DNA of 64,000 bases from Rebecca billardiae RCC1528 (Eukaryota; Protista; Haptophyta), in the NCBI GenBank assembly GCA_965240325.2, contig OZ251241.1, positions 868,001 to 932,000 on the forward strand, written 5' to 3'. The notes beneath the pieces are model-generated. The model worked only from the letters and a program-made list of their open reading frames with translations. It was not told the DNA's origin and ran no database searches. The first letter of the stretch is position 1. Each line of letters begins with the position of its first letter. The position numbers were made by a program, and so were the translations under genes. Of this stretch, positions 10,219-55,599 are shown one piece after another.

Positions 10219-10249
<31 letters not shown>

Positions 10250-10886: not shown

Positions 10887-10918
<32 letters not shown>

Positions 10919-24412: not shown

Positions 24413-25197
24413 GCGGCCGTCGCTGGGCAGCCGCTCGTCGCCGCTCGATCGACAAGCGCTCGATCGACGACAAGCGTGAGCGCCGCAGCCAACCGTCGTC
24501 TTCACCGGAGCCCTCCCCGGCCCGGACTCTGGGCGAACTCGGAGAACGGTCACTCCACGGGCGACCGGAGAAGCAGCGCGATGGCGGGTTGGAGTTCGAG
24601 GACGGCAGCCCGTCTCTCTGACCCGATGCATGGCGAAGCCTTCGCCGCCCGGCCCTTGCGCTGGCAGTAAGCCGCTATCCAGCTAGTGAGTAGCTGATGC
24701 AGCCACCGGGACCGCGCGCAGGTGGTCAGTGCCCGTGCCGTATCAGGTCCGAACCAGCTGCAGGCCGAACGGTCGAAGCACTGGGTCAAGAACTGACGAC
24801 GTTCACAGCGGGAGTGTGGCGGCAGTGGGCACCAAGCTACTACTACGTGAACAACTTTCTCCAGGATATGCCTCGTGATGGCGGAGCACTCTCGACTCTG
24901 CGTCAGGTGTACTGTCACCACGCCCAGGGCCTGGCACCGCCCGTTCTGATCATCACCCTTCGTCCTCGATGTCTCGATAGTCGTCTGCACTTAGTCGATC
25001 GTTCGACGTCTTCGACGACGCCTCAGTCATCGTCCTTGAAACGTGTTACGCAACAATTATTGTCGTCGCATCGAAAGCCTCGTCATGCGACGAGATGAAT
25101 CCTCAAGCCAGTACGAGTGCGCACCTGTAATCGGAATCGTCGGACATCGATCTGACTGATGAGGCTCTGCGCCGCGGCCAGTGACGCTGCGCTCTGA

Positions 25198-27030: not shown

Positions 27031-27084
27031 GTGGCCGCCGCAGTGATCAGCCCTCGTCGCCGCTCGAACGCTGCAAGCGCTCGA

Positions 27085-34100: not shown

Positions 34101-35957
34101 ACAGGTGAAGGACAAAGTCGACGCGCGCCGTGTGCCGCCCGGCGGCGGGGCCGGAGCGGGCCACGCCCGGCCTGATGCGCTGGATCTGTACGGCGGCCTC
34201 GCGCCGCGCGAGGCCGAGCTGGCGCACGAGGAACGCGCAGACGTGCCGCGTGCTCACCGTTGCGTCGGACGGCGAGAGCACCACGGCGAACGACGTGTAC
34301 AGCTGCAGTCGGGACTCGAGCGCGCCGCCGCCACGCGCGTCGCGCCACGGCGCGCCGCCGCTGCCGGCGGCGCGGTCGGCGCTTGTCAAGTCTGCCTCCA
34401 CCTCGTGCTTGACGGCGGCGGCGACGACGGCGCGCGGGCGCGTGCGGTCGGCGGCGGTGGCGATGCTCACCGCGTACTCCGCCACGCGCGGCGCCTCGCC
34501 CTCGCCGCCGCCCCCGCCGCCGTCGCCGCCGCCGCCGCCGCCGCCCTCACCCTTCTCAGCCGCGTTGCTGCGGCTGCTCAGGAAAGCGCCAACTGCCGAG
34601 AGCGTGCCCGTTACGGAGGAGAGGGAGATGACGATGGTGGGCAGCGCGTCCGGCGCGTCCAGCACCTCGATCGCGAGGTACACCGCCGCGCCGAGCAGCA
34701 CGGCGGCGGTGGCGACGAGCAGCAGCACAAGGACGATTGCATCCGACGGGCGTGCGTGCAGCGCCTGACGTGCGGCCGCACGCGCGCGCACGGCAGTGGT
34801 GCCGAGCCCGTGCGCAAAGTTGGCCGCGGAGGTGGCGGAGGCGACCGGCGAGATGCGCGCGCGGAAGTCGAGCGCCGCCTCCGCGACGCGGCCCACCGGG
34901 TCGAGCGTGTTCTCCAGGCTCACGATCCCCTGCAGCTTACGCACGCCGCGTCGCGCCGCATAGTACCCGACGGAAGCAGCGCGCACCTCGTTGAGGGCGC
35001 GCGTGAGAACTGTCCCGACGTCTCGGCTGAGCGTGTCGCGCGTGGCCGCGCTCGCGTCGCGCCACGCCCACAGGGCGAGGCCGCCGCTCGCCGCCGCGCT
35101 GCGCTTGAACGCGTCGACGCGCGCGCGCACGCGGCGGCACGCCGCCTTGGACACGCGGCCGCGCGCCTCGCGCCGCCTCGCCGCCTCGGCGAGCAGCTCG
35201 CCAAAGGCCCCAAGCACCTCCGCGCAGCCGACGCCGAGCGCCGCTAGTAGCGAGGCCACTTCTGAATCTCGCGCGCCGAGATCGGCTGAATCTCGAGCGC
35301 CGAGATCGCCATCCGCGCCCGCGCGCGCGCGCGCGTCGGCGACGCCTGGCTCCGCGGCGGCGGGGCCGAGCTCCAGCGAGGTGAGTGCGCCAAGAGACGC
35401 GTGCAGGTGCGCCGCGCCGAGCACAGCGCCCGGCGTCTCCGCGGCGGCGACGCGCGCGAGGGCGGTCGCGAGCTGCGCGGAGCTCGGCCAGCCGCCCGCG
35501 GGCGCGAGCCCAAGCCGATTCATCGCCTCCTCGGGGTACGCGTTCTCGAGCTCGGCGGCCGCCTCGTCGTCGAGCGCCGCGCCGTGCACGAACAGCCCGA
35601 GGCCGAGCGCGCGCAGCTGGCGCAGCAGCAGGTCCCCGCGCACCCAGCGGTCCACCCGGCCCAGGAGGCGCGCGCTGTGCGCCGCGTGCGTGTGCTGCCG
35701 CGCCGCGCCGGCGCCGGCGCCGAGCGCCGCGGCCGCCGCGCCCTCCGCCGCGCTCGCAACGATCGCGGGTACGGCGGGCCTGAGCTGGTACGCGGACGCG
35801 GTGCTGGGCATCGACTTGGCCGCCGACGCCGCCACCGGCGGGAGCCGCGGCGCGTGCCCCTGCGCCGCGCGCCTCGCCGCCGCGCCCGGCGTGTCTAGCA
35901 GCAGCCCTGTGACATCCTTGACCGGTCTCGCCTCCTCCTCCGCGCCCTCCTCCTCCG

Positions 35958-35989
<32 letters not shown>

Positions 35990-38900
35990 TCCGCGCCGTC
36001 GTCGTCCGCGCCGTCAGCCTCCGTGTGCGCGTCGGCGTCGGGCGCGCACTGCCGCTGCAGCTCGGCCTCGGACGCGCGCAGCCGCGCCTCCGCCTCGCGC
36101 CCCACCGCGCCCTCGATGAAGAGCGCCGCGCCGTCTGCGATCGCGTCGGTGCGCGAGACCTGGCACACGCGCCGCACCCACTTGACGCACGCGGCGTGAA
36201 CAAGGCGGCCGAGCGCGTCGTGTGCCTCGAGCTCAAAGCAGTCGGCCGCGTCGAGCGCCGACGCGCCCAGCGGCGCCTCGCGGCGCTCGTCGGCGACGGG
36301 GGCGAAGGCGACGTTGGCGGGCGAGTCGGCGGCACCGAGCGCGAGCGCGCGCGGCTGCGGAGGCGAAGGCGGAGGCGTCGCGGGAGGCGGCGGGAGCTCG
36401 GCCGCGCCGGCGGCCTCCACCAGGTTCGACGGCTCCTTGCGCGGCGTCGCGCTCTGCCCGCTCGGCGGCGCCGCCGCCGCCGCCGCCGCCGCCTCCGCCG
36501 CGCGCCGCGCCGCCGCCGCCGCCGCCTCCGCCTCCGCCTCCGTCGGCAGGTTCGCGCGCAGGACAGTCGTGATCGCGCCCAGCTCGGCGAGCGCGCGCAG
36601 CGGCCGCGAGTGCGCCTGCACGACCTGCTGCACGATGGACGCCGCCTCCTCCGCCACGCGCTCACTCAGCAGCGCCGTGGACAGCCCGCCCGCCGCGCCC
36701 GCCGCGTGCTCCGGGTCACAGCCCGCCAGGAAGTCCGCAAACGCCTTGAGCGCCTGGGCCGCCGAGTCTCCCACGGCGGGGACAGTAGCGACGGCCATCC
36801 CGACCGCCTCGTCGCGCACGAGCGACAGCGGCACCTCGGTCGCCTGCCGCAGCAGCCGCACGGCCGCGCACGCCTTGTCCAACTCGTGCAGCACCGCCGC
36901 CAGGTCCTTCGCCGGCTCGGCGAGGTCCGCCACGTTGCTGTTCGCCGCGGCGGCGAGCGCGGCGCCGCAGCCCGAGAGCAGGTCGCGCGTCGTGTCCGCC
37001 TCGGCCAGGGCCGTCTCTGCGCCGTTGGCCGCCGCGTTCTGCGCCGCGACGTGCTCGGCGAGGCCGTCGACCGCGCCGGACGCGCGCGCGGCCACAGAGT
37101 TGAGCGCGCCCCCCGCCGCGGCCGCCGCGCGCCGCGCGCCGCCGCCCGCCTTGCTCGCGGCGCCCGCGGCGCCGAGCATGCCCGCCGCGGCCGCACGCGG
37201 GTCCGCGCCACCAAGCGTAGCGTTCAGCTCGCCCATCAGCTCGTCGACGGACGCGTCGACGACGCCGGCGACGCCTGTGGTCTGGGTGCCGCCGGCGAAC
37301 GCGACGAGCGCGAGCGCCACCACGGGCAGCGCGTACACCTCGAGGATCTGCGCGGTCACGTCGCGCCGCACGATGGCGGCCAGCAACACCGACTCTGCCG
37401 TGTAGATGAGAAAGGACAGGTCAGCGATCAGCACGAGGCGCGCCAGCAGGGCGAGCGCGCGCTGCGCGGCGTGCGCGCGGCCGAGGTCGGCGCGGGTCGC
37501 GCGCACGCCGAGCGGGCCGGGCGTGCGGTGCGCAACCATCTCCACCGTCGCGAGCAGCAGGTACGCCGCGCCGAGCCCGAGGCAGCCGTAGGCGACGCCG
37601 CCGAGCGCGGACTGACAGCTCGCACTCGCCTGCCAGCACGGGCGCGACGCCTGCACAAACGCCACGCGATAGACGGTGACGATCAGGGGCGCGACGAAGA
37701 GAACGTGGGCGAGCGGCGCAAGCGCCGCGGGCATCACGCGCCGGCCGAGCGCGTGCAGCAGCGGCGTCACCCACGTCGTCAGCGGGCCGAGCTCCTGCCC
37801 GAGCCGCTCAAGCTCGGTGGCGCGCTCGGCGGGCAGCAAGGAGGTGGCCGAGGGCAGCAGCCGCGCGCCGTGCCGGCTGAGCAGTGAGAAGAGCGCGTCC
37901 GCCGGGTTGAACGCGCGCACAAAGTGCTCGAGCGCGAACGCCGTGCCGCAGTACCGGGCGAGCATCGCCTCGACGAGCTCGGGCGCGCCGCGCGCGTCGG
38001 CGTGCCACCCGCCGCGCTCGGCGTCCGCCTCGGCGGCGCGGACGGTGAGCACGGCCGCGGCGAGTAGCTCGGACAGAGCCACGTGCCGCAGCGGCGGCGG
38101 CGCGAGCGGCGGCACCGTCGGCGGCGCGTCCGCGAGGCGCAGCACATCCGAGACGTCGCCGAACAGCACCGAGTGCGGGCAGAAGAGCTTGCGCCCGACG
38201 CGCACCAGATACACGCCGGGCAGCCGGTGCGTGCGCACGCACACGCGCGCGAGCGCGCGCCACTGCTTGTTCGAGTCTGTCACGCGCTTCGGCCGCGTCG
38301 CCATCGGCAGCGAGGCGAGCAAGGCGGGGCGCAGCCCGGCGGCGCTCGCGCCGCCGAGCCCGTCGGCGTCGCCCTCCTCCTCGTCCTCCTCCTCGTCCTC
38401 CGCCCCGCCCACCACGCCGTACGAACGGCGCTGCGGCACGACGATGCCACCGGTCAGCGGCCCGCGCCAGCCGGGCCACCTCCGCCGCCCCGCGCCGCTC
38501 GGACCGCCCTCGGCGCGGCCGCGCGACGTCGGCGCTGCGTCCGCGTCGTCGCCCTGCGCCGACGCAGCGGCACCGCCGAGGCCTGCGCCGCGCGCGCGCG
38601 CGTCCTCCGGGCTGCCGCGCGCCGAGGGCGAGGGCGCCACGGTGCCGCGCGCGCGCGCGTCCTCGCGCACTCGCGCGGCGTACGCGTCAATCGTTCGGCT
38701 GACGAGTGTGCACAGCCTGGGCTCGAGGAAAACGAGCTCCGCGTCCGGCCCAAGAGCCGGGAGCGGGAGCGCGCCCGCGCCGTGCAGGCGCATCAGCCGC
38801 GCGCGCATCGCGCCGCGCACGGGGCGCACGAGGATCGCGCCGGCGGCGCGCATCACGCGGCCGTGCACGGCGAGGGCAATCAACAGCGCGAGCCCGAGCG

Positions 38901-41900
38901 CGGCGACGACCGTCGTGACCACCGCGGACGAACGGCCCGAGCCGTCGGCGGCGTCCATGCTGATGGGCTCGGACGCGGGGCCGTCGTGCACGTAGCTCGC
39001 GTACTGGCGGAGCGGGAACGCCAGGTCGATCATCTCGTCGGTCGCGACGAGCAGCCCGTCGAACCCGAGCAGCAGAAAGTAAACCGCGTCGAAGCGCTCC
39101 GGCCGCACCGGCCGCATGAACGTGAAACGCCGGTCGGTCGAAAATCCGGCGTCGAAGGAGATGCCGGCGAGGACGAGCGCCCACCACGCGCACGCGGCCC
39201 AGTGCGTGAGGAGCGTGCGCGCGGCGGACTTGGCGCCCTCGCGCCACGTGGCTGGCTCTTTGGCGTCCGAGTCGTCGCGGCCGACGACGAAGCTCACGCG
39301 CTGCACCGGGTGCGGCGCGAGAGGCCCGGCGCGCGCCCACACCACCTGCACACTCAGTCCGCCTACGCTGAGGAGCGGCCGCGGCCGGAGGCGCGCGTCG
39401 GCCGTGGAGCCCTCCGACGACGCCGCCGACGCGTCGGAGCGCAGGCTGGCCGCGGCGAGGTTGGCGACGCCGTCGGTCACCCTGTCGGCGAGCAGGGACA
39501 CCGCGCTCTGCGCGTGCGCGTGCAGCGCGCGCAGCCTGTCCGCGTCGTCCGCGCCCGGCTGCACGCACAGAAGCGTGTCCGCCCCCGCGCGGTGGGTCGC
39601 GCCGTCCGCGGGCATGCCGCGCGTGCGCAGCTCGGCGCCGAGCGAGTGGTGCGCACGCTGCAGCGGCGTCAGGCCGATCGCAAGCGTGTGCGACAGCCAG
39701 ATGCCCTCCACGCCGCTGCTCCCCGCCGGGATCGCCGCCGCGCCGACCGCGCCGCGCGCCGACCGCGGCCGCGCGCCGCAGCACGACAGCGGGAGCATCC
39801 AGCGGCGGCGCGGCGGCGGGGCGGCGGGCTCGGCGCGGCCGGCGAGGCGCCCGAGCAGCCACACGCGCGTGCTCGTCGCGACGAAGCGCTGCGTGTCCCC
39901 CGCGCGCAGCAGCAGAGCGCCGCTCTCCCGATTCTCCGCCTCAAGCACAACGCTGCTGCCGCCGCCGCGCTCCAGCCAAGAGCCTCCGCCGCTGCCGCCG
40001 CCGCCGCCGTCGGCGTCGGCGGACGCGGCGTCGGTGCCGTCGGCGGGGCCGCCGCCGCCCTCGTGGCGCAGCTCGGTCAGCGCGTGCACGCCGTCCTCCG
40101 GCTGCCGCAGCTCCGACGTGCCCCCTCCGTTCTCGACGTCGTGCAGCTTCCGCGCGCGCCACTCGGCGAGTGTGCGCGCCACGGCGCGGCCGGTTGGCTC
40201 CTCCGAGGCGGGCTCGCCCGCGGCGACTGGCGCGCCGCTGGCGGGCGCCTCGGCGCCGGCCTCGGCGAGCGGCACGCCGCGCGCGCGGCGCACGCCCTGC
40301 GCGTCCGCCGGCAGCGGCGCGTCGTACGCGCGCGCGCAGCGCCACACCAGCAGCGTCGGCTCTCCGCCGATGCGGCCGTCCCGCCCCTGCGCCCCGCCGT
40401 CGTCGTCGTCGTCGTCCGCGCCCGCCGCGACGACTTCTGCCAGCGCGGCCTCGCCCTGCCAGATGAGCAGCCAGCGGCGCTCCTTGAGGAGGGTCTCGAG
40501 CGGGCGCTGCAGCAGGCGGCGCAGCGGCGTGGCGAGCGGCGCGTCCCGCACGCCCGCGCCGAGCACCAGCACGCGCGGCGCGGCGAGCACGAGGGCGCAC
40601 TTCTCCTCGCGCGCGCGCGGCGCGCGCGGCAGCAGCGCGCGCGCGCGGCGCGCGGACGTTGCCCCTGGCTGCTGCGCGGCGCGCGCGGCCTTCTTGTCGG
40701 CGTCGGTCCACACCGAGGCGAAGAGCAGGGCCGCGCCGCGCTCGTCCGCGTCGGCGGCGGCGCCCTCCTCCGGCGCAGGCGCGCCGCCGTCGCCCACGTC
40801 GCGGCCGTTGTCGGCCGCGCCGCCGCGCTCGGCGGCCGCGCCGCTCGGGGCGGCCGCGGCCTCGTCGCTCCAGCGCGGCGCGAGCGCACCGCCGCCACCG
40901 CCGCCGGGCGCGGGCGCGGCGCACGCGCGGAGCGCGCTCTCCCACGCCGAGCCGACGTAGTGCGCGTGCCAGTACACGCCTTCCTCGTGCAGCTTGAAGG
41001 TCGCCTCGAGGTCGATGCGCTTCCGGATCGAGCGGTCCGCGCCGCTGGGTGGCGCGCCGAGCGCGAGTGCAACAGCGGCGGTCGCGCACGTTGCAAAGCC
41101 AAGTGTCAGCAGCAGGACCGGCAGGAGCCACAGCGTGAGGTAGGCGGCGGTGCCGAAGCTGCCGGCGTCGAGCGGCGGCGGCGCGTTCGGAGGCGGGGTG
41201 CCAGGCGCGGGCGGCGAGGGCGGCGGCGAGGGCGGCGGCGGCGGCGCGGGCGGCGGCGCGTTGGGCGGCGGCGAGGGCGAGGGCGAGGGGGCGGGCGGCG
41301 GCGAGGGCGGCGGCGCGGGCGGCGCGGATGGTGGCGCGCTCGGCGGCTCAGACGGCGGCGGCGGCAGCGGCGGCGGCGCCGAGGGCGGCGCGGAGGGCGG
41401 CGGGCGTGGCGGCGGCGACGGCGGCGGCGGCTCGGGCACTGTGAGTGTATCCAGCGTCGGCGGGATCACAACAGTCAGCAGCCCAGCGCCCGAGCCATCG
41501 GCGCCGCCGCCGCCGCCGCCGCTGCCGCCCTGCGCGGGCGGCAGCAGCTGCTGTGCCCACCAGGCCTCCGCGCCGCTGAGCTGCAGCTGCCGGCGCGAGC
41601 GCCGTCCGCGTCGGCGCCCCAGCTCGTCCCCGCCGCCGAGCGCGCGCAGCGCGAACGACACGTTCACGTCGCCCTCCTCCCAGCCCCCCTCCGGGTGCAG
41701 CGCCACGGCGAACTCGCCCGGCGCTGTCTGCTCGGCAAGCACCGCGATGACGGAGGGAGCGGCGCCGCCCGAGGGGAGCGTGGCCGCGGCGGGCTTGCCG
41801 ACGAGGACGCGCGGCGCGGTGGCCGGCGTGGTGGCGCCGGCCTCCAGCGCGAGGCGCACGACCACCTCCGTGTGCAGGCCCGCCGGCGCGCCGTCGCGGA

Positions 41901-44900
41901 ACGCCACCGCCGCGCGCACGAGCAGGTCCCCTTTCGACGAAGCGGAGACACAGCCCACTTGCACGTTGCCAACTGTCACGTCGCTCAGGAAGCGCATTCG
42001 GTTCGACGCGATGGCGTGGAGGTAGAGAGCGTCGGCGAGGGCGAGGGCGCCGTCGCGTGTCGCGTCGAGCCGCGCCGCGCACGGCAGCGCCGACGCCGGC
42101 GCGCCGAGGGCGACCCGCTCCGCGAGCAGCACGTCGTACGACGTGAAGGCGCAGTCGCCGTCGCCGTCGCCGAGCACGGCAGGCGCGCAGCAGCCGAGCG
42201 GCGCGCGCGGCGCGCACGGGTCGGCGGGCGCGAGGACGTCGGCGTCGGCGGCGTCGTCGAGCTCCCACAGCGTGTCGGCCGCGTGCGCGGCGCACGCCGC
42301 TACGCCTGCCGGCCCGACGCGCGCGCGGCGCGCGCGGCACTCCGCCCCCCAAACCAACTCCACAGCCACGCCGTGCGCGCTCGCCGCCCAGCCCACCAGC
42401 GCGGTGCCATTCGCGGCGGCGGCGCCGGCGGCGGTGTCGGCGTCGCGCGGCGCAAAGACGACGGTGGCGAGGCGCACGAGCCGGCCGGGCGCGGCGGCGC
42501 CGCCGTCGGCGCCGTCCGCCGAGATCCCATCCGCGCCGCCGGCGATGACCAGCCGGCCCGGAAACGCATGGTCGGGCGCGCACAGCGCGTGCGACACGCG
42601 CGCGGCCGGCGCGCACGAGCTCACGCGAAGCACGTCGGCGTTGTAAGCAATTTCGAGTTGGTACAGCCGGAGCGGCGTGGCGCCGACGTGCGCCCAGAAG
42701 CTGAGCTCGGCGGCCTCGCCGCCGTCGAGCAGCCGCACCGGCGGCACGCACGCGAGCGCGCCCTCGCCCTCGCCCTCCGCGCCGAAGCCCACGCCGATGC
42801 GGCCGAGCGGCGGCGTCGCAACGACGGCAGCGAGCGTCGCGCGCGCGATGACGGCGGTTGAGCACGTGACGCGCGCGCTCAGCTCGACGGCGGCGGCGTG
42901 CGTGTCCAGCAGCTCGACGGTGCCGTCGCCCGCGCTCACGTTCACCGCGCACGGCGCGGACGAGCCGTACGCGAACGCGCCCGCCAGCGCGCCATGCGCC
43001 GCCGTCGACACCATCGTGCCGTCAGCAAACGTCGCCAGCAGCTCCAGACGCCCGAGCGTGGCGCGCGGCGCGCCGCACAGCGCGCCCGGCGTGGCGCGCG
43101 CGCGCACCGAGGCGACGCCGAGCGGCTCGGCGGCGGAGGGCTCGACGGCGAGCTCGGCGAGCGCGCCGCGCCACGCCGCGCGCACGCGCGCGCTGCCCGG
43201 CGACACGCCGTCCACGACGAGCACGCTCACGCCGCCGCCGGCCGCACCGAGCGCGCGCGCGGCCGCGACCGCGGGCGCAGAGCTCGTCGTGTTGAGCTCG
43301 GCGGCGGGGACGTCGGCCCAGGGCGCGGCGGGGTGCGCGCGCGCGCGCACGCGCAGCACGGCGCGCTCGAACGGGCCGTCCGCGCACGCGAGCCTGCGCA
43401 GCACCAGCGTCTCCGCCGGCGTCGGCGACGCCTCGTCCACGTCGGCCGCGGCCGCGACGGCGGCGTCGGCCGCGGCCGCGTCGGCGGCCGCATCGTATGC
43501 CGGCAGAAGCGTCAGGGCGAGCTCGGGCACGGCGGGCGCGATGGGCAGCGTCGCGCGCGCGGAGAGGCCGCTCGGCGCGTGCGTTGCGACGAGGCGCACG
43601 TCGCCCCGCACCGCCGGGTCCGCGCACGCCGCGCCGAGCGCGCCGGACGGCGGCAGCTCGACGCGCGCCGCGGCGGAGTCGGGAGCGGCGGGCGAGCCGG
43701 CAAAAGCGGGCGGCGCGCGCGCGACGGGCGCGGCGAGCGCGGCGCAGCCGGCGTCGACGCCGTCGCCCTCGAGCGAGACGGCGACGCCCGCCGCGCTCGA
43801 GACGTCGACGACGCTGCCGTCCGCGTACACCAGCTCCACCGCCACCTCCACCGAGTCTGGCAGCCCGAGCGGCGGCGCCGCGGCGGGCTCGCTCCCGAAC
43901 GCGAGCGCGGCCGCGCCGCGCAGACGCACCCGTAGCTCGGCCAGGGGCGCGCGCGGCGTGTCCACGCGGGCGAGGGCGAAGCCCTCCCACGCGGCGGCGG
44001 GCCCCGCGCCGCACGGGTCCCAGAGCACGCGCACGAGCTCGCCGCACGCCGGCGCCGCCGTGGACTCGTCCAGCACCACGCCCGTGCCGTTGGCCACGAC
44101 GCTGAGCCCTGCGTGCGCGGAGAAGGTGCCGCCGAGCGCGGCGGCGGCGGCCGCGCCCGCGCGCGGCAGCTCAGCGACGCTGCCGTCGTCGAAGGTGGCG
44201 AAGGCGATGATCGCGGCGGTGTCGCCCTCGCGCGCCAGGGTCTGCGTCAGCCCGAGCGTGCCGCTCGTGTTCGAGCCGCCGCCGGGCGCCACCTCGCTCG
44301 CCCAGAACGCACCGCTCACCGCATAGCCCTCGACAGCTGTCACGGCGGCCATGCTGTCTGACACGCGCACAAGAACGGACGCGTTCAGCGCGGCGATGCC
44401 GCCGTTGAGCGGGCGCACGGTGGCGACGCCCGGCGCGACGCCGCGGAGCCACCCGCCCGCCTCGACCGCGACGACGCCCGCGTCGTCCGAGCCCAGCACG
44501 AACGCGTCCGTCGCGTCGACGACGCCCCACGGCAGGTCGGCGCGCACACGCACGCGCGCGGGCTGGTAGACGCCGGCCGCGGCGCACACGCGGCCGAGCG
44601 TGCCGTCGGCGTCGGAGAGCTCGAGGCGGACGGCGGCGGGCACGGCGAGGGCGAAGGCGAGCTCAGTGCTTACCCGCCCGCCATCCGCGCGGAGCAGCAC
44701 GCGCGCCACCGGCGCCGCCGCCGCCGCGTCGATCTCGTCGCCGAGCTCGAGATTGCAATCTGAGCCGACGCGCACGGAGCGCGCGCTCGCGCCGTCGGCA
44801 GCGACGCACGTCGCGTCGGCGGCGAGGGCGATGGGCTCGTGCGGCGCGTCGCTCAGCGCGAGCGCGCGCGCGCGCAGTGGCACCGCCGCGCGCTCGCCGA

Positions 44901-47900
44901 AGAGTGGCGCGCCATTCACGAGCGGGCGCGGCGCGGCCGTGCCGCACGCGCCACCTCCGTCGACGTCGGCGGCGGCGGCGGCGCCGCCGCCGCCGGCGGC
45001 CGCCGCCGCCGTGCTGTTGCCGTCGGCCAGAGGCAGCGGCAGCAGCGCCGCGAGCTGCGCGCGCACGAGCTGCACGCCCGCCGCGCGATCGTGCGCCCAC
45101 GCGCCCGCGCTCTCCGCGTCCGCCACCGCGGCGCGCGGCGCGTCGCACTCGAGCGCCGCCGCAAGAGCGCTGAGCATGGCGCCACACGACGCGCCGAGCG
45201 CGCCGCCCGCCCAGCCGGCCGCCGCGTCCGGACTCGAGCGAAGCGTGACCTGTGCGAGGACAACCTCGCCCTCGTCGGCGGCGTCGGCTTCGTCGGCGAG
45301 CGCGAGGCTTGGCTCGGTCTGCGCCGCGACGCTCGCCAGCGCGAAGCTGCCGTTGCCCAGCGCGCGCACCGCGGGCGCGCGCAGCAGGCCCTCGTCCGAG
45401 CCCTCCGGCGGGCCTCCGACTCCGAGTAGCTCAAACGCCGCGCCGACCAAGATGTTTGCGTGCCACGCGCCGACGCCGCTCGGCGCGCGCGCGGAGATGC
45501 GCACGACGAACGGCTCGGACACGCGCACCGGCGCGCGCGGCGCGCGCAGCAGCAGACGCACGCCGCCGCCCGGCGCGCCCGCGTCCATGGCGGCGGGCGC
45601 AGCCGGTGCGGCCACGAGTGTCGCGCGCGCCTCGGCCGCGGCGCCACTGCCCGCGCGCGCGCTCACGACCAGCTGGCGCGCGCTCTCATTGCCGAACCAG
45701 CCGCGCGGCACGGCGGCCTCGCATTCGGCGAGGCCGGCGCACGCCCACTCCGCGTGCGCCGCGCACGCCAGCACGAGCGTGCCCTCCGCCTCCGCGCCGG
45801 CCGCGCCCGCCGCGCCGACCGGCCGCGCCGTCACGTTGAGCGCCACGCCGCCGCCGGCCTCGGCCGCCGCCCACGGCAGCGGTTCGCCCGAGCTGTCTCG
45901 GAGCTGCAGCGCAATGGAGAGGGTTGGGCGGTCGGCGTGGAGGAGCGGCGTGCGCAGCGCGAGCCCGAGCGTCGACACGCCCCGCACCTCCGCCGCCGCG
46001 GCCGCCGCGGCCGCCGCCGCGACCGCCGCCGCGCCCGTCATCCCAACCCCAACTCCGCCGCTCTCTGCCAGCGCGGACGACGCGGCTCGGCCCAGCGCGC
46101 CGCCGAGCGCGCCGCGCAGCGCGGCCGCGCCGCCGCGCAGCGAGTAGGTGCTCGGCGCGCCGGCGTCGGCGAGCGCCACCCAGCCGCCGCGCTCGGCGCC
46201 GAGCGCGCTCTGCTGCGCGACGAGGGCGCGCGCCGCGCCCGCCGTGAGCAGCTCAGGCTGTGCGCACGCGAGCGGCGGTGGGCTCGGCGGCGCGGGCGGC
46301 GGGCTCGGCGGGCTCGGCGGCGGCGCGGACGGCGGCGGGCTCGACGGCGGCGGGCTCGGCGGCGGCGAGGGCGGCGGGCTCGGCGGCGGCGGGCTCGGCG
46401 GCGGGCTCGGCGGGCGCGCCGGCGGCGGGCTCGGCGGCGGGCTCGGCGGCGCGCTCGGCGGCGGCGGGCTCGGCGGCGGGCTCGGCGGTGGCGCAAACAC
46501 CTGGATTGAGATCCCTTCGAGCTTCTCAAAAGAATCGACGCCAAGGTCGGTATGCGGCGGCGCGCTCAGCCCCTTGAACGCGCGCAGCCCGACATTGTCC
46601 GCGAAGCGGCCGAGCTCCTCCGCGCGGTTGAGCCGCTCCACGCCCACCGCCGCGCTGATCGCGCCGCCCACGCGCGGCCAGCCGCCAGCGGGCGCCGCGA
46701 CGCGCACCACGAAAAGCCCGCCGCCCGCGTGCTCGGCGCGCGCCACCCAGTGTCCAGCAGAGGACTCGCCGCCGGCCCACGTCTCGCCCGCCTCGTACGG
46801 CGGCGAGCCGAGCTCGGCGTACCCCACGTCGAGCTCGAAGAGCACCACCGCCTCGGCGTCGAGCGTCGCGTCGTCCGACACCGGCTCGCGGTTGTAGTAA
46901 GACTCGAGACGCGCCGAGAGCTCGAGCGCCGAGCTGCCGCCGAGACCGAGCGTCGGCGGGCTCACGGAGGCGTCGGCGAGGAAGTGTAGTCGGTTGAGCA
47001 ACACGTCGCGGAGGAACTGCTCGTTCGCCGCGACGGGCGTCGCGCTCTGCCACTCCGCGCCCTCGGGCGTGCGCAGCGCCGGGTCCGTCTGCAGCCGGTC
47101 CCACTCGCACAGCGCCGAGCGATCCACCGGGAACGCTGACGGCACGCCGGCCTCGAGCGCCGCCAGGTGGAGGCGGAGGCGGGTGAAGGCCAGGAGGTCG
47201 CGCGCGGACGCGACGCCGTCGCCGTCGAGGTCGCCGCGCACGCGCAGCGCGCAGCACTCGCCGAGGCCGCACTCCTGCGCGCGCCGGCCGCGCGCCGCCG
47301 CCGCCGCGCGCTCCGCCGCCGCGCTGCGCGCCGCGCGCCACGCGGGCGCGGGCGCGGCGGCGGCTCTCCTGCGCGCGCGCGGCCGCAGGCTAAGCCGCTG
47401 CGTCAGCGAGCGCCGCCGCCGCCCGCCGCCCACGAGCGCGCACGTCTCGCCCGCGACGGCGGCGGTGGCCTGCACCGACGCGCCCGACGCGGTGAGCAGG
47501 TCGTCGATCGTCGCGCCGATCCTCGCCGCGCTCTCCGCACCCACGCCGCCGTTGACCGTGAGCACCACCGTGACGAGCGTGCCGCCCGCAAACGTCGACT
47601 CGGGGTCAGACGCGAGCACGTACACACGGTCCGATTGTCCCTGGCAGGAGACGCCCATCTGCGGGGAGACGCCGACGCACGTGTCGGCGCGGCGGTACGA
47701 GAGCACCGACGGGTCGAACTCGACGAACAGGCCGAACGCGCGCAGCGCCGAGCCGCCCGTGTTCACGCGCACCGCCACGCGCAGCTCGGCGCCCGCCGCG
47801 GCCGAGCCGGGCGTAAACGGCAGCGTGCCGGAGGCGTGCGCGCCAAGGTCGACGTCCAGCGCGGCGGGGTTGAGGTTGGTGCCGAGCAGCGCGGTCGCGC

Positions 47901-50900
47901 GCGGCGGCGCGGAGGCGGCGCCGCCCTCGGGCACGCACGAGAGCGCCGCGCCCAGCTCGAAGCGCGCGCACGCGTTCTCGAGCACCGTGAGCGCGCCGGT
48001 CGCCGCGTCGACCGCGAGCGCGGCCGAGTCGGTCGAATCATACTCGAGCATGCCTGCCAGCCAGCCGTCGGCCGCGGCGAAGGAGGCGACGTCCGGCAGC
48101 TGCGAGCCGTCGGCGAGGGTGGCGGTGGCGAGCAGCCGGCGCGAGGACGAGCCGCTCACGCCGCTCACCACGCCGCCCGGCGCGGTCGAGCCCAGGCTCA
48201 GCGCCGAGATTGCGATCTCCTCGTCGACCAATCGGATCGCGGCGGCCGCCTCCCAGCCCGCCCACGCCGCGGTGGCGAGCGCGGACTCGGCGGGCGCCCG
48301 GCCCTCGAAGACGCCCGCGTCCGAGCCGAGCGGCACGAGCGCGGACGTGCCCGGCGCGGACCAGCCCACCGCGCTCGCGGGCAGCACGCCGCCGCGCCCG
48401 TCGCTCAGCGCGTAGGCGGCGCGCGCGCGCAGCCGCTGCCAGTCGCCGCCGGCACACGGGATGCGGCGGAGCTCGGCGGTGGGCGCGCAGCCGAGCGTGT
48501 CGAGCGCGCTCGACGGGTACGGCGCGCCGGCGCACACGCTGAGCGCGCGCAGCCGCACAACGGGCACCACCAGCGTCGCCGGCGCGAGGCCGAGCGCGGC
48601 CATCCCCACCGTCACGTTGAGCTCCGCGCACGGCGCGCCCGCGCGCACGCGCACGATCCACGAGCCGCTACCGCCGCCATCGTCGCGCGAGAGCTCGGCG
48701 CACGCCGCGCTCGCGCCGCCGAGGGTGGCGTTGAGCCGCGCGTCGGCGGAGAGGTCGCGCACCTCCTCCTCGCCCGGCGCGTCCTCGCGCGCAAACGTGA
48801 CGCGCGCGACCACCGCGAACTCCGTCGGCAGTGACACGGGCGACGCGGCGGCGGCGTCATCCGGAGGCGCGACGCCCGCCTCCGCGTCGCCGCTCGCGCC
48901 GAGCGCCAAGCCGGTCGCGACGGGCAGGTCAAGCCTGATCAGCGCCTCGGCGGTGGCGAGCGGCGCGGCGCAGCCCGCGGGCGTCCACTCCGCGCGGACG
49001 AGCGGCGCGCACGCGCCGACCGCGCCCGCCGCCACGGTGAGCGTCCACGCATCTCCCGCAATCTCGAGATCGAGATCTGGCGTGAGCGCCGTCAGTGCGA
49101 GCTCGGACGGCGGCACCGCGATCGCGCGGCTCGCGTTCGCGCCGGCGCCGTCGTACTCGGCCCAGCCGAGCACGCGCGCGCTCTCGCCCTCGAAGCGCAG
49201 CGTCTGCTCCAGCGTCGCCACCGCGCGCACCGCCGCCTCGTCGCCGCCCTCGCCGCCCGTGAGGTCCAGCGAAACGGCCGACACCGCCACCAGCGAGAGA
49301 GTAACGGCCGAGCTGGCGCTTGTAACGGTCACGGGCGCGGGCGCGACGACGGCGGCGTCGGCGCCGTCGAGCCGCACGAGCGCGTCGCCGGGGGCGACGC
49401 CGCGCACGTGCACGAAGCCCGCGCCCGTCGCCTCCACCGCCGCGACCGCGCCATCGCTCACGCCGAGCTGCCCCGCCACGCGCCTCGTCAGGTCGAGCGC
49501 CGCAGTCGTCGGCAGCCCGGCGCCGCCCAGCCGCGCGAGGACGCGCGCGCGCGCGCGCTGGAAGTGAGCGGCGCACGAGGGCGCGGCCTCGAGCACGCCG
49601 TCGTCGAGCTGCACCGCGGCGGACTGCACGGCCCACACCTGCAGCGGCACGAGGGCCACCTCGGCGCCGTCCGCTTCGCGCGTCACGCGCACGTCGACGC
49701 GCGCGGCGCCGGACCGCTGCGCCGCGCCCGCTCGCACGGACGCGCACGAGTCGACGACGAGGACGTCGGCCGCCGCCGCGGGCTCGGCGGGCGCGCAGGA
49801 GTAGCCGCTCAGCGCGAGCGAGCCGAGCCCCGTCGCCGCGCGCGCGCGCGCCGCGGTCAGCCCCAGCCCCGCGCTCGCCGCGCTCGGCGCGCCGCTCAGG
49901 GCGCCATCGTTGAGCAGAACCGCCGCAGGCTCGGCGCTCGCAAACACGCCGATGATGGCGTTGGCCTCGACGGTGAGCGAGGCGGTGGTCTGGCCGGGCG
50001 CGAGGTCGGAGCCGTCGGTGACGCTCATCGGCGCGGCGCTGAGGTACTCGAACGCGGGGAATGTCGTCATGCGCACCACCTCGCCACTCAGCGCGCCCGA
50101 GTACTCGCCCGCGCTCGCGCCCGCGCGCACGCGCAGTCTCAGTGTGAGCACAGCGAGATCGTCCGAGGTCACCTGCGCGGCGCCCACGCCCGCGGCGACG
50201 TCGAAGACGTTGACCCGCACCGTGTCGCTGAACTCGAGGCGGTTGACGTTCGCGAGGAACAGCCCGCCCACCTGCACGTCCGCGTTCGTGTCGCCCGCCG
50301 CCAGCTCGAGCACCGCCGCGTCAAATCTGAGCGTGATCTCCCACGCGCGCAAAGGCACGCCACCCGTGTGCGCGCGCACGCTCACGGTGAACGTGTCGCC
50401 GGCGAAGACGGGCGCGGAGGCGAAGGCGGCGCGCATGCCCGCCGCGCTCATCGGCGGCTCGTGCACCGGCGTGCGCGCCACGCTGAGCGCGCCGCCCAGC
50501 ACCGCCGACGCCACCTCCTCCTCGCTGTACAGGACTCGGAGGTCGGCGCTCGCGCTCCGCGCCGCCGCGGTGCTGAACCAGCCGGCCGGGAAGTTTCCGG
50601 AGCATTCGCCGATGCCCGTGGTGGCGCTCGGCGTGGCGCACGAGAGCGCGCGCGTCGCGGTGGGCAGGTCGTCGCGCGAGAGCGTCGCGCGCACGCTCAG
50701 CCCCGAGCGCAGCACCGCCGTCCGCCCCGCCGCGTCGCGCAGCTGGAACGCCAGACGCACGGCCGTGCGCGTCGCGTAGCCAACCGCCGTCCTGACGAGC
50801 GCTCGGACCTCGGCCGCGCGCGCGCGCGGCGCGGTGCGCGAGCTGGAGGCGAAGGTGACGGCGGCGAGCGACGTGTCGACCGTGACGGTCGAGCCCGGCG

Positions 50901-52416
50901 CGAGTGCGAACAGCCCGCCGAACGCGCGCGACTGCTCCGCGCCGCCGCTCCCCGCCTCGCTGCCGTCCAGCGCGAGGGCCTGCTCTGAGCCGAGCCGCGC
51001 GCGCGCGCCCGCGACGAGCTGCGTCGGGTCGCGGCAGAAGGCTGGCGGCGGCGGCGGCGGGGCGGAGGGCGGCGAGGGCGGCGGCGAGGGCGGCGGCGGC
51101 GGCGAGGGCGGCGGCGAGGGCGGTGGCGGCGGCGGCGGCGAGGGCGGCGGCGGCGAGGGCGGCGGCGACGGTGGTGGCGACGGCGGCGGCGAAGGCGGCG
51201 GGGATGGTGGCGGCGAGGGCGGCGGCGAGGGCGGCGGGCTCGGCGGCGGCAAAGGCGGCGGGCTCGGCGGCGGCGAGGGCGGCGGGCTGGGCGGCGGGCT
51301 GGGCGGCGGGCTGGGCGGCGGGCTCGGCGGCGGGCTCGGCGGCGGGCTCGGCGGCGGGCTCGGCGGCGGCTGGAAGCACGACGCGATCGGCTCCGGAAAC
51401 TCGTGCGCGCACGCGCCGCTGCCCTTGCCCGCGCCCACCGTCCCCATCGAGAAGCCTGCGAGCGGCTGCGTCGTGTTGACGGTGCGCATGGCGTAGACGT
51501 GCAGCTGCTCGTACACGAGCTCGAACGTGCCCGCCGGGCGGAACGGCTCGCCCACGCCGCCGCCGTTCCGCAGCACGAGCTGCACCGCGAAGCTCGAGCC
51601 GCAGCCCGACGCGGCCTCGTCGCAGCACGCATCCGCCAGGCTGGCTGAGAAGAGACAACGGTGGTCGGCGACGCGGTCCCAGACGAAGAGCGCGTGGTCC
51701 TCGTGCACGCGCGCGTGCACCTCGTTGTTGAAGTCGTACAGCAGCGGGATGAACTCCCACGAGTCGTCGCCCACCAGCGCGAAGTGCCACATCGGCGCGA
51801 TCAGCGGCCGCGAGCGCAGCTCGGCGAGGTTGGGGTAGCGCGCCTGCAGCACGCCCGACGGGTCCGCGGACGGGAGGAGCTGGACGAAGCCGGAGGAGGA
51901 GACCTGCACGTGCGAGTAGTTGGCGCCGCCGTACGGGAACGGCGTGTCCAGCGCCACGATCGCCGACGGCGAGCCCGGGTCGCCGCCGATGCCGGACATG
52001 GCGAGGGGGCTGAGGCCCGCGTGCGCGCACGCGTCGCCGCTCGTGCCGTCCGCGTCGAGCGAGAGGCCGCCGAAGCGGAGGTCGCTGCACTCGGAGGGCG
52101 CGACGAGGTCGTACGTGCACACGTCGTAGTCCGCCGCGCCGCGCGGTGTGAAGCGGCGCACGCTGCGCGCGAGGCCCGCGTCGTCGGGCACGAGCCGCGA
52201 CGACGCATCGGGCGGCGGCGGGCACGTCTCGCCCGCCGGGCAGTACTCGTCGATGTCGGCGTAGGTGAGGCCGACGCACTCGCCAAAGTGGCCCGTTGCC
52301 GACACCTCGCGCGGTGCGCAGCACAGCGCGAGGAGCACGCCGCTGGCGCTGACGATGCGTTGTAACCGTCGTCGCATCGTCATCGGTGGGCGTCTTGAAG
52401 GCGCGTCCATCCTCAT
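31184..52416 (-). CDS. Giant (~7027 aa) multi-pass membrane protein: signal peptide, NIDO-like domain, 2 x [cohesin-like, Ig-like (TMEM132-like), cohesin-like, dockerin-like], SPPP linkers, ~10 TM segments, C-terminal coiled coil; intron 31953-32101
   Basis: A 20.3-kb open first exon. A GTGCGC...CAG intron joins RQQ(D) to ETARALLDAVN in frame, with the stop at 31184. Motifs: FPYGGANYSHVQVSSSGFV...LIAPMW (NIDO); LRAWEITLRFDAAVL, LRAFGLFVEFDPSVL, LRLYQLEIAYNADVL (cohesin-like); GDLDGDGVASARDLL and GDGDGDCAFTSYDVL...DATRDGALALADALYL (dockerin-like). Confidence 0.85.
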
Positions 52417-53240
52417 TCTATACTGTTACCGTGCGTTTTGATGGGTCAGACGTTCTGACGAAGCCGTTGACCCGTTAGTGGTTCGCGTGTTTACTGGGTG
52501 CTTGAATGGGAGCGTTCTGAACGGTCATCGATTTATCACTCCGGCTCGCGAACAGATTACCGTTACGCAGTGCGGTACGCCTCGGGCCGCCGGCGCCAAG
52601 GAAAACTTACCCCTGATGGGTACCCAGGTATTTTACATATGGGAAAATCAAATGCAAAGATTCTATTTGGACTCCCTGATGCCAGTGATTTGCCGGACCA
52701 GCAGTCATGCAGTGGTGAGCACAGCGGCGCTCCGTGCCGCAGGCGCGCACTCGGGTCCCGCTGCCGGCAATACTCAGCAGCCGTCAGCCTTGAGGGCCTT
52801 GAGGTACTGTCGCAGGCGGGCATGACGACGACCGGAGTCGGCATTTGCCTTGCAGCAGTCGTTGACTGACTCCGTCTCCAGGACAGACGGGACACGTCAC
52901 ACTGAGCAGCGGCAACTCGAGTCCCGCCATCGGCCACTTCTCAGCCCCCCCGCGCGTGGGGCGCAGCCATACACGCAGGGCATGCAGTACGCACGCGGCC
53001 CGCCGGCTGGCAGCTGCGCCCGGCCGCGTGCGTCACGCTGCTCTCCACCGGGCAGCGCGACGAGCGCTGCGCCCAGCAGGCCGTCGTCAGGCCGTCGTCA
53101 CGCACACACGCGCGCACACGGGGCCGGGCGCTGCCCCCGCGGCCGCGCGCTCGCTCGCCCAGCGGCCAGCCCACCAGCTGGGGCAGCGGCGGCCCGCGCG
53201 GCCGGGCGGCTGGCGCGGAGCGCGGGCGCCGAGCGTGTGC

Positions 53241-55391
53241 TCACGCGCCGGCGCCGAAGGCGAGCAGGCCCGTGCCGCTCGCCACGACCAGCTGCTGCGC
53301 GTCCGTCGCGAACGCCACGCGCACCACCGCCCCAGGCTCGAACGAGCAGAGCGGCTCCCACGACTTGGTCGAGAGAACGCGCGCGCCCCTCCCGCCGCCG
53401 GCCGCGAGGAACTGCGCAGAGTCGTCGAAGCGGACGCTCGCGGCGACGCCCGCGCCCTCCTCCCCGAGCGTGCGGAAGCTGGTCAGCTTGCGCAGGTCCC
53501 ACAGCTGCGCGGCGCGCGCGGCGCGAGGGCGCGCGGCGCGTGAGCGCGGTGCAGACTCGCGACCGCTTGCGCGACCGGCGCGAGCGAGCGCGCGCCGGCG
53601 GTGCGCCGCGCGCCGCCGCGGCGCAGCGCCGGCGCACCTTCACGATGCCCGAGCTGTCGGCCGTGGCGAGGTGGTACCCGTTCTCCGAGAACGCGAGCCC
53701 GCTGATCGCGCTGCCGTGCGCGTCCTCGAACGACGCGGCGTTGCTCAGCGACTTGACGTCCCAGATCCTGACCGCGCCGTCGACCGCGCCGGTCGCGGCC
53801 AAGAGGCCATCCGGGTGGAAAGCGCCGGAGCTGAGTCCGGCCGTTCCGGGCGCGCGCGCGCCCGCGGCGGGGCGGCCCTCGCCGAGCGCGAGCAGCGCGA
53901 AGGTGCCGTCGAGCGAGGTGCTCATCAGGTACTCGCCCGTCGCGTGCAGCGCCAGCGCCGTCACCGCCGCGGAGTGCACACTCACGCTGTGCGCACACGA
54001 GCCGACTGCGCGGCGCGGCGCGGCGCGGCGCGGCGCGGCGCGGCGCGGCAAGGCACGGCGCGGCGCGGCAAGGCAAGGCGCACGGGGGCGAGTCACGCCT
54101 CGGCTGCGGGTCGCGCACGGCGCGCGCGGGGGGGGCGCGCCGCGCGGGGCGGCGGGCCGCGCCGCGCGCACCCAGCTGCTCGTCCACGCCCCACAGCTTG
54201 ACCACCGCGTCGTCGCCGGCAGAGCACACCAGCGCGCGCGAGCGGTGAACGAGGACGTCGCGCACCGCGCCGCCGTGCGCGCCCGCCGCGGCGAAGCTGG
54301 CGGAGGCGCCGGTGGCGGCATTGACGAGGGCGACGGTGCCGTCGGACGCGCCGATCGCGGCGCACACGCTCCACCCCGCCGAGCCCTGCGCCCCGGGCGG
54401 CGCGAGCCCGGCGCCCGCCGCCGCGACGTCCATTGCCGTGAGGGTGGCGCCAGCGCCGAGCGCCTGCGGCGCCGTTGCGCCAAGCTGCGTGTACGCACCC
54501 ACGGCGGCGGGCGTGGCGCACGAGGCGGGCGGCGGGCGCTTCTTGCGGCCCTTGGAGAGGCGCTTGGCCGTCGCCTCGAACTCCTCGATCGTCGACGGCG
54601 GCAGCGCGCCGGCCAAGCCCGCCGCGGCCGCCGGCTGCGCGGCCGGCTGCGGCGCGCCACCCGTCACCGCCGCAGCCGCGGCATCGCCTGTCCGCGTGCG
54701 CTTGGCCGGGTGTCCGGCAGCGTCGGCGGCGATGGCGCCGGGCGGCGCGGTCTCTAGCGCCCTGCGCGCCTCGTCGCGCTCCTGCGTCAGCCGCGCGATC
54801 ACGCGGCACGCCGCGTCGTGCTGGTACAGCGCGTGCGCGAGCTCCTTGCGCGCGGTCTCCAGCTGGGCTTTGAGCTCGAACGATTCGAGCATCAGCGCGT
54901 CCCACTCGGCGTGGAGCAGGGAGAGCATGCCCGGGATGGAGGTGGCGGAGGGCGGGCGCGGTTTGACCACCGTGCTGTCTGCTCGCCGCCGCCGCCGCGC
55001 GCGCGCGCGCGCGCAGCGTGACGCCCGGGTCAGCAGCCTGTGCGCGCGCGCGGCGCTCGGCGCGCGCGGGCACGCGCGCGCGCACTCTGCAGGGGGAGCA
55101 GGTCGTCGAGGGTGAGCTCCTCGCCGGTGACGGGGCATTTGCCCGTGCTCTCAACGTACTTCTCCACCAGCCCCTTCTCGAAGACGTGCCCCGTCTTCCT
55201 CGAGGCCACGGGCACATCGGGCGTATGGCCGGAGACTGGTCGCACAGCGCCGCAAGCGCGCGCGCGCGCCGCGCAGCCGCAAGCGCCACGGCGGTGAGCG
55301 CCGAAGGGTGGGCCACGGTGGCCGAGTGCAGAGAGGCGGGCGCAGCGGCAAGCGCACACGCGCGGCGCGCGCGCGCACTCGCGCAGAACAT
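53241..55391 (-). CDS. PRP19: Pre-mRNA-processing factor 19 (U-box, coiled coil, WD40); introns 55236-55378, 54979-55085, 54006-54171, 53505-53637
   Basis: The spliced product reads [32 protein letters not shown]...[27 protein letters not shown]...[19 protein letters not shown]...FHPDG...[11 protein letters not shown]...VKLWDLRKL, all hallmark Prp19 motifs. Four in-frame GT-AG introns. Confidence 0.95.
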
Positions 55392-55599
55392 GGCCGCCTC
55401 GTCAGTGTCGTGCGCGCGGTACTCGCGCGAGGCCAGTAGTCGCGTCGTCTTCGGCAGAACGATGGCGGCGTTCCCGCTCCGATGTGCAGCTCTTGCTTGT
55501 GAGCTGAGTCTCGGAGATGTTCCGAAAAATCACAAATCCATCACCTTTTTATTTGAACTCGGCCGCAGCATGGCGTGACCGAGACCAACGGTAGGGCAA

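Follow-up and report, generated by a model that had tools for sequence, protein, structure and literature searches.

The window analysed here is a stretch of 64,000 nucleotides from the haptophyte Rebecca billardiae RCC1528 (contig OZ251241.1, positions 868,001 to 932,000, forward strand), and all coordinates below are counted from its first nucleotide. Its minus strand carries a single stop-free open reading frame (ORF) at 31921-52416, comprising 6831 codons plus a stop in ~20.5 kb, and the DNA of this gene has a GC content of ~80%, compared with 60-69% in parts of the flanks. The length of the frame proves little by itself because other frames also hold long spurious ORFs (e.g., a plus-strand frame of 1592 aa at 38083-42861). 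The GC content at third codon positions (GC3) lies at 0.88-0.98 in all 34 blocks of 200 codons and far above that at second positions (GC2) throughout the ORF. This bias in every block, together with the 143 homologues described below, identifies the ORF as a real gene; the whole of it is coding in the minus-strand frame, with no visible intron. Its product, hereafter the giant, is a type I cell-surface glycoprotein, a location predicted from its translation, with two tandem cassettes on proline-rich stalks. Each cassette holds two cohesins and one dockerin-like module, an identification of modules and cassette that we regard as very secure. We tentatively propose that the dockerin clasps the cohesin upstream of it on the same chain, across a linker that may be cut.

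From the N-terminus, the modules of the two units are as follows, with residue numbers of the giant in parentheses and confidence from structure models given as the predicted local distance difference test (pLDDT):

50458-50979, minus strand: CR1, a conserved beta-rich region ahead of cohesin-a (aa 480-653), with 49 family matches by phmmer
50020-50457, minus strand: Coh1, a type-a cohesin (aa 654-799), recognised by Pfam Cohesin and the type-a profile
47806-50019, minus strand: unit-1 immunoglobulin (Ig)-like array (aa 800-1537), which aligns collinearly with the fourth, fifth and sixth TMEM132 Ig domains of homologues
47458-47805, minus strand: Coh2, a type-b cohesin (aa 1538-1653), recognised by the type-b profile
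47287-47457, minus strand: linker 1 (aa 1654-1710), in which multibasic motifs occur three times (RRRR 1666-1669, RARR 1680-1683, RGRR 1709-1712)
46954-47286, minus strand: Doc1, dockerin-like (aa 1711-1821), with loop 1 intact, loop 2 degenerate and an insertion
46447-46953, minus strand: X1, a conserved post-dockerin domain (aa 1822-1990), with 11 family matches
45553-45969, minus strand: CR2, the unit-2 counterpart of CR1 (aa 2150-2288), with 12 family matches, collinear with cassettes of the family proteins P0002 and P0001 and modelled as a beta-sandwich (pLDDT 80-93)
45166-45552, minus strand: Coh3, a type-a cohesin in degenerate form (aa 2289-2417) and the weakest among the cohesin and dockerin modules
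42721-45165, minus strand: unit-2 Ig-like array (aa 2418-3232), with collinear matches to family cassettes
42403-42720, minus strand: Coh4, a type-b cohesin (aa 3233-3338), recognised by the type-b profile and Foldseek
42190-42402, minus strand: linker 2, predicted to be disordered (aa 3339-3409; RARR 3361-3364; pLDDT <50 at model residues 142-189)
41959-42189, minus strand: Doc2 (aa 3410-3486), dockerin-like, its two Ca2+ loops both intact
41617-41958, minus strand: X2, a post-dockerin beta-sandwich (aa 3487-3600), all-beta in the model (pLDDT 78-92) and collinear with the X domain of family protein P0006

Modules and family of the conserved cassette

Used as the query of an exhaustive HMMER search, aa 640-1839 of the giant retrieved 143 relatives (best E=1.8e-136), many of them collinear with it over 1100-1200 aa; the closest, from haptophytes, share 31-36% identity with the giant. 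A word-indexed search with aa 480-3720 gave no match, neither a close orthologue nor the giant itself. The shared cassette is ancient, is ~1300 aa long and runs from CR through cohesin-a, an Ig-like array of ~740-815 aa, cohesin-b, the linker and the dockerin to X. The six cohesin and dockerin modules of the giant are two copies of this cassette, one per unit, and family proteins hold 1-4 copies. The distance from the start of cohesin-a to the start of the dockerin is 947-1115 aa in 42 cassettes, and for 86 of 88 dockerins a cohesin lies upstream at a distance of 28-106 aa (median 60). The two units of the giant give no BLASTP match to each other; the duplication is old, and its homology becomes visible only via profiles or third-party cassettes.

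We scored the modules with family profiles built from the 143 homologues, the Rebecca billardiae protein being left out, and used as a null control 300 locally shuffled, composition-preserving ectodomains, for which the best domain scores were 6.6 bits (cohesin-a), 2.6 bits (cohesin-b) and 1.9 bits (dockerin). All six modules score above each of the 300 shuffles, Coh3 by a small margin. Coh1 reaches 112.7 bits with the type-a profile and is also detected by Pfam Cohesin (PF00963; E=3.3e-7; 31 bits, with the gathering score at 24.1). Coh2 scores 52.2 bits with the type-b profile versus 29.2 with type a, and Coh4 scores 17.4 bits with type b. Coh3 scores 7.5 bits within the full-length protein and 15.7 bits when its segment is taken alone, with an alignment that spans nearly the whole profile at the exact type-a position predicted by the cassette. 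Two cohesin subtypes are seen family-wide, type a after the CR region and type b ahead of the dockerin: none of 131 type-a copies is followed by a dockerin, and 85 of 113 type-b copies have one within 200 aa, with 16 copies truncated. Pfam Cohesin is passed by 32 of 52 family type-b copies (best 3.6e-15). Against the PDB, the top 16 matches of the cohesin-b family profile are all cohesins, and the type-a cohesin/CR profile reaches PDB cohesins at E=0.09-0.2, not better. AlphaFold2 (AF2) models of the Coh3 and Coh4 regions, made with family alignments, are all-beta (pLDDT 75-93 and 70-88, respectively). Foldseek ranks cohesins on top for the Coh3 model (probability 1.0; TM-score normalised by the target, TMt, 0.57-0.66) and as the best single-domain matches for the Coh4 model (probability 1.0, best E=2.4e-4), with TMt to cohesins of 0.5-0.66 over the two models. 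Both modules are predicted by these models to have the cohesin-type beta-sandwich (jelly-roll) fold.

For the dockerins, about 90 copies emerge from a search whose starting profile was made of Doc2 homologues. The curated dockerin alignment (A1) matches 4fl4_A (E=7e-9) and 2ccl_B (1.9e-8) in the PDB, and with the family profile 32 dockerins precede the first non-dockerin. Pfam Dockerin_1 (PF00404) is passed by 34 of 51 family copies taken alone (best 5.3e-9). The two copies of the giant have no Pfam match alone and score 48.2 bits (Doc2) and 29.1 bits (Doc1) with the giant-free profile; phmmer of the ectodomain against the PDB gives one match only, that of Doc2 to the dockerin 2ccl_B, at a non-significant E=1.7. 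A type I dockerin has two tandem segments of ~22 residues, in each of which a Ca2+ loop (D1, N/D3, D/N5, D12) precedes a helix. Doc2, modelled with three helices at pLDDT ~90, combines loop 1 (D1/D3/D5/D12) and loop 2 (D1/T3/D5/G6/D12), ~33 residues apart, and so has the two Ca2+ loops plus helix of a dockerin. Doc1 has this feature in part: its loop 1 is kept, and its loop 2 carries A3/Q5/N12, which makes it the sole copy among 61 aligned without Asp at loop-2 position 12 (60/61 have D12). In loop 1 the family has D1 in 73/73, N/D3 in 65/73, D/N5 in 73/73 and D12 in 70/73 copies. Position 6 of this loop, Gly in bacteria, is Cys in 52/73 copies; there is also an upstream C..C and, in alignment A1, a frequent fourth Cys in the inter-helix segment. 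These conserved cysteines, absent from bacterial dockerins, suggest disulfide stapling in the secretory pathway.

Could all this consist of chance motifs in the Gly/Asp/Ala-rich translation of 80% GC DNA, the ORF being no gene at all? The long spurious ORFs in other frames, such as that at 38083-42861 on the plus strand, and the failure of five of the six modules to pass Pfam singly would fit such an artefact. It is effectively refuted by the GC3 bias over all 6831 codons, by the 143 homologues with their long collinear alignments and by shuffles that never come near the observed scores, Coh3 excepted, and we assign it a negligible probability.

On 32 aligned cassettes (alignment A3), Pfam finds Ig_TMEM132_4th in 27, the 5th domain in 13, the 6th in 6, and the 2nd and the 3rd (cohesin-like) in one each, together with Cohesin in 13 and Dockerin_1 in 8. 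From these TMEM132 Ig matches, the first half of the cassette is the TMEM132 architecture, and the second half is extra: cohesin-b, dockerin and X are missing from animal TMEM132 proteins. CR1 occupies the position of the TMEM132 conserved region or second Ig domain, the domain matched in a single cassette. The family profile of X gives no significant match in the PDB or Pfam. The link to TMEM132 drawn in the initial annotation is therefore upheld at the level of the family, with Ig_TMEM132_4th in 27/32 cassettes, and falls short in the giant's own Ig region, where Ig_TMEM132_5th alone is found, at 13.9 bits and E=0.06, below Pfam significance.

The best matches come from the haptophytes Prymnesium parvum, Pavlovales sp. 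CCMP2436 and Diacronema lutheri. Other named relatives are those of the prasinophyte Cymbomonas tetramitiformis, of Mesostigma viride and of the choanoflagellate Barroeca monosierra, and the remainder are metagenomic. In UniProt, the relatives from Prymnesium and Cymbomonas carry the automatic name 'TMEM132 fourth domain-containing protein', and public databases otherwise list relatives as hypothetical proteins. The Barroeca monosierra protein passes the Pfam gathering scores of Ig_TMEM132_4th, Cohesin and Dockerin_1, in cassette order; together with the algal copies, it places the dockerin-bearing cassette in at least three eukaryotic supergroups. The four named algal hosts (Prymnesium, Pavlovales/Diacronema, Cymbomonas and Mesostigma) we take to be scale-bearing flagellates. 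A role of their family proteins (P0001, P0003, P0008/P0012/P0145 and P0017) in anchoring organic scales is conceivable, and the choanoflagellate member, whose host bears no scales, speaks against a strict link to scales. In the literature consulted, which did not cover Peer et al. 2009 or Nichols et al. 2012, we found no account of the cohesin-b/dockerin/X extension or of its distribution.

The breadth of this distribution also bears on the view that the modules are purely structural, the cohesins being beta-sandwich spacers or ligand-binding domains and the dockerin a Ca2+-stabilised, disulfide-stapled hinge, with no recognition between them. Outside cellulosomes, cohesin and dockerin modules with no known partner are frequent, according to Peer et al. 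2009 (cited in PMC6030884). The degeneration of Coh3, of Coh4 and of loop 2 in Doc1 suggests relaxed constraint on binding surfaces, and the conserved Cys at loop position 6 is unlike bacterial dockerins. That a single cohesin subtype is paired with the dockerin across three supergroups is, however, hard to explain without functional coupling, and the positions of the Ca2+ ligands are almost invariant; we therefore regard a purely structural role as unlikely.

The initial annotation had described four cohesin-like and two dockerin-like modules in a cell-surface protein of a eukaryote. All six are found within about 40 nt of where it had placed them, and the loops are as it had read them, with the second loop degenerate in the first dockerin and both intact in the second. 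Profiles, PDB matches and Foldseek support homology with bacterial cohesins and type I dockerins, and modelling combined with Foldseek did not return the generic Ig or EF-hand folds that it had named as the alternative. What it had missed is the two-cassette repeat, the existence of two cohesin subtypes, the pairing of a single subtype with the dockerin and the multibasic linker. The eukaryotic origin agrees with relatives in haptophytes, green algae and a choanoflagellate and with neighbouring genes that combine Armadillo repeats and a BTB domain (ARM+BTB), and the surface location with the predicted signal peptide and transmembrane (TM) helix.

Remaining parts of the protein and neighbouring genes

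Outside the cassettes, the giant has the following parts, those likened to hydroxyproline-rich glycoproteins being marked HRGP:

52297-52416, minus strand: predicted signal peptide (aa 1-40), with basic n-region, hydrophobic core and VSA/TG, judged from the translation
51373-52296, minus strand: N-terminal Cys-rich domain (aa 41-348)
51013-51402, minus strand: proline-rich (SPPP)n stalk 1, HRGP/extensin-like (aa 339-468)
46243-46518, minus strand: proline-rich stalk 2 (aa 1967-2058)
41599-41616, minus strand: RRRGRR right after X2 (aa 3601-3606)
41155-41469, minus strand: proline-rich stalk 3, membrane-proximal (aa 3650-3754)
41062-41139, minus strand: first TM helix (aa 3760-3785), the first strong hydrophobic helix in a hydropathy scan
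31924-41061, minus strand: C-terminal ~3050 aa, of low complexity, with five more hydrophobic segments and a coiled-coil-like, Ala/Arg/Glu-rich end

The signal-peptide-like start and the TM helix at aa 3760-3785 delimit an ectodomain of ~3750 aa, in which three (SPPP)n or PPSPPP stalks, of a kind typical of algal HRGPs, separate the N-terminal domain, both cassettes and the membrane. The N-terminal Cys-rich domain matches neither Pfam nor any of the 143 family proteins; one stretch of it looks, by eye, like the NIDO 'IAPxW' motif, with no Pfam match at E<=0.01. The C-terminal ~3050 aa, coding by GC3, have no Pfam match and no similarity among family members, and may form one protein with the ectodomain or reflect a fusion of gene models. 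Their hydrophobic segments lie at aa ~4499, 4897, 4987, 5024 and 5894, amid Gly and Asp runs; the coiled-coil-like end covers aa ~6200-6780, and the AT skew is -0.37 at 32-34 kb.

The antisense ORFs within the giant gene (38083-42861 on the plus strand and others, up to 1592 aa) are by-products of the extreme GC3 bias and not genes, a warning for ORF-based annotation of the Rebecca billardiae genome; in the 38083-42861 frame, the GC content at first codon positions is 0.93. Among the neighbours in the window are three ARM+BTB genes, which confirm the eukaryotic context. They are tandem paralogues (ARMC5-like) at 18455-27120 on the minus strand, two of which have an identical peptide stretch near their N-termini, and represent a local gene family expansion. 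More long ORFs with a GC content of 76-83% lie at 7557-14528 (plus strand) and 52850-58493 and have no match in Pfam, and by GC3 they are coding-like, as in the examples 7557-12134 (1525 aa, GC3 0.89) and 55600-57456 (618 aa, GC3 0.92). Within the 64-kb window we found no further cohesin- or dockerin-bearing gene.

A candidate cleavable clasp

Cohesin-b and the dockerin are joined by a linker of ~60 aa, disordered by model, with conserved basic motifs at two places: RR(R) right behind the last cohesin strand, and R-x-R/K-R or RRxL 5-10 residues before the dockerin C..C. Within the 30 aa that precede loop 1, RR is present in 56/73 copies (7% of background windows) and R.[RK]R in 28/73 (1.3% of background windows), a family-wide enrichment of 10- to 30-fold at this position that includes the choanoflagellate copy. 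In the ectodomain of the giant, multibasic motifs are confined to the n-region of the signal peptide, the stretch immediately behind X2 and the two cohesin-b/dockerin linkers, of which linker 1 has three sites and linker 2 a single one. In diatoms, RRL/RXL motifs of secretory proteins are removed by an unidentified protease (PMC5525289). The linker motifs resemble such RXL sites or kexin/furin-type sites, and the linker may be processed by a protease.

An AF2 model of Coh4-Doc2-X2 (511-aa construct) reaches a predicted template modelling score (pTM) of 0.66 despite ~25% disordered residues, from which we infer that nearly all ordered residues lie in one body. Adjacency, the flexible ~60-aa linker and this pTM together point to docking in cis. 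As our favoured mechanism, to which we give a probability of roughly 0.4-0.5, we propose that the dockerin would bind Ca2+ via its two EF-hand-like loops, stapled by the family-specific cysteines, fold back over the flexible linker onto the upstream cohesin-b and pack against X, forming a compact clasp. A secretory-pathway protease would then cut the disordered linker at the RR, R-x-R/K-R or RRxL motifs, leaving the two halves joined solely by the Ca2+-dependent cohesin-dockerin contact, a strong, releasable joint. The type-a cohesin, never adjacent to a dockerin, would remain available to a trans ligand, in keeping with what has been proposed for TMEM132. The joint of unit 2 would draw on two intact loops, and the unit-1 dockerin, with its second Ca2+ loop lost, would present a single binding face.

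In the main alternative, which takes up the lattice suggested in the initial annotation, the dockerin might bind a cohesin of another cassette or molecule, likeliest the free type-a module or a neighbour's cohesin-b, which seems to us possible but not probable. With at least two cassettes per chain, the protein would then polymerise into a Ca2+-dependent surface network, an adhesion plaque or an anchor of the cell covering. Binding in trans would suit the one dockerin that each cassette sets against two cohesins of different subtypes, and the multivalency of family proteins with their 1-4 cassettes. As textbook precedent, trans binding is the rule for the adaptor scaffoldins of bacteria, which have cohesins and a dockerin, and the scale-bearing algal hosts presumably have an extracellular layer that may need a tether. 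Strict cohesin-b/dockerin adjacency and a flexible linker of constant length would, however, be unnecessary for binding in trans, and the pTM of 0.66 suggests that the cohesin-b/dockerin/X unit is already self-packed. The lack of another dockerin or cohesin gene within the window and a choanoflagellate host without scales likewise speak against a lattice.

Several points weigh against the cis clasp and the module assignments beneath it. When the six modules are isolated, Pfam finds Coh1 only, the other five giving nothing at E<=10, and the sequence-level match of Coh3 is marginal; AF2 models driven by multiple sequence alignments may take their fold from better-conserved relatives. Twelve type-b cohesins have no detectable dockerin despite room for one. 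Unit 2 has its single basic site without the dockerin-adjacent R-x-R-R-x-L, and the Arg-rich linkers may in part reflect GC-codon bias, yet the motif is conserved in relatives that are not GC-rich. The contact in cis is read from adjacency and pTM. In bacterial scaffoldins with both module types, moreover, the dockerin is normally not bound to cohesins of its own chain, an analogy that favours binding in trans.

Cohesin and dockerin are among the strongest known non-covalent protein pairs and have been studied almost wholly in bacterial cellulosomes. Outside animals, the TMEM132-type cassette has a dockerin in cis, a possible cohesin partner on the same chain; for the cohesin of animal TMEM132, the binding partner had been left open (PMC6030884). 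The cassette makes the questions of cohesin partner, Ca2+ and linker cut directly testable and suggests a way to build or release cell-surface assemblies in ecologically important algae. Its disulfide-stapled eukaryotic cohesin-dockerin pairs are possible orthogonal connectors for protein engineering. A more far-reaching proposal, which we consider doubtful, is that the ancestral eukaryotic TMEM132-type cassette had its own dockerin, forming with cohesin-b a self-contained, protease-cleavable, Ca2+-dependent, force-bearing and non-covalent joint that was lost toward animals. If true, haptophytes, green algae and choanoflagellates would have kept the joint, and its loss would account for the orphan cohesin of human TMEM132. 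It would also be the first case in which a eukaryote has turned the ultra-strong cellulosome connector into a mechanical fuse, or a device for shedding, within a surface receptor.

Comparison with known systems

TMEM132 proteins are type I membrane proteins with a conserved region, a cohesin and three tandem Ig (BIG-like) domains, and no dockerin homologue is detectable in vertebrates (Sanchez-Pulido & Ponting 2018, PMC6030884). The giant has the same module order as this family and as the TMEM132-like block of choanoflagellate and sponge cadherins (lefftyrins, coherins and hedglings). It differs from TMEM132 in that the Ig array of its cassette is followed by cohesin-b, the other cohesin subtype, and then by the multibasic linker, the dockerin and X, and in that the cassette is duplicated in tandem, with the units parted by proline-rich stalks, instead of forming a single block directly before the TM helix and a cytoplasmic tail with PP1/WIRS motifs. 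Its 6831 aa contain no TMEM132 N- or C-terminal Pfam domain (TMEM132D_C included; PP1/WIRS motifs were not searched). The giant is TMEM132-like, not a TMEM132 orthologue.

With those cellulosomal scaffoldins whose single chain bears cohesins and a dockerin (e.g., the adaptors ScaA/ScaB of A. cellulolyticus and C. thermocellum CipA with its X-dockerin dyad), the giant shares homologous cohesin and type I dockerin modules, as seen in profile or fold matches to the bacterial structures 4fl4, 2ccl, 3l8q, 6kge and 5nrm. The likeness extends to the canonical ligands of the Ca2+ loops, an 'X' beta-module beside the dockerin and flexible Pro/Ser-rich linkers. Unlike the scaffoldins, it has a eukaryotic host, X after rather than before the dockerin, conserved cysteines in its dockerins, an obligate cohesin-b neighbour and a basic linker. 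Pfam finds no carbohydrate-binding module or glycoside hydrolase domain in the giant, and we saw no separate dockerin-bearing subunit. It thus uses cellulosome-type modules, yet is no cellulosomal scaffoldin, a type of protein from cellulolytic bacteria whose cohesins, usually accompanied by a carbohydrate-binding module, take up enzymes tagged with dockerins.

Non-cellulosomal cohesin-dockerin pairs are described in glycoside-hydrolase toxin complexes of C. perfringens (Adams 2008, as cited in PMC6030884). These pairs (2jh2/2vo8/2w1n), whose cohesins are among our Foldseek matches, illustrate cohesin-dockerin as a general connector; unlike the giant, they belong to secreted bacterial enzymes that bind in trans, with no Ig array, TM helix or cassette repeats. 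Furin-cut Notch, adhesion G protein-coupled receptors with the GAIN domain and its proteolysis site (GPS), and SEA mucins are comparable in logic only, with no homology: in the family of the giant, a conserved cleavage-type motif lies in a disordered stretch between two domains that might remain associated. In the RXL-processed wall proteins of diatoms (PMC5525289), finally, which likewise show no homology, the RRL/RXL motifs resemble the RRxL of the giant's family, whose enrichment hints at possible cleavage.

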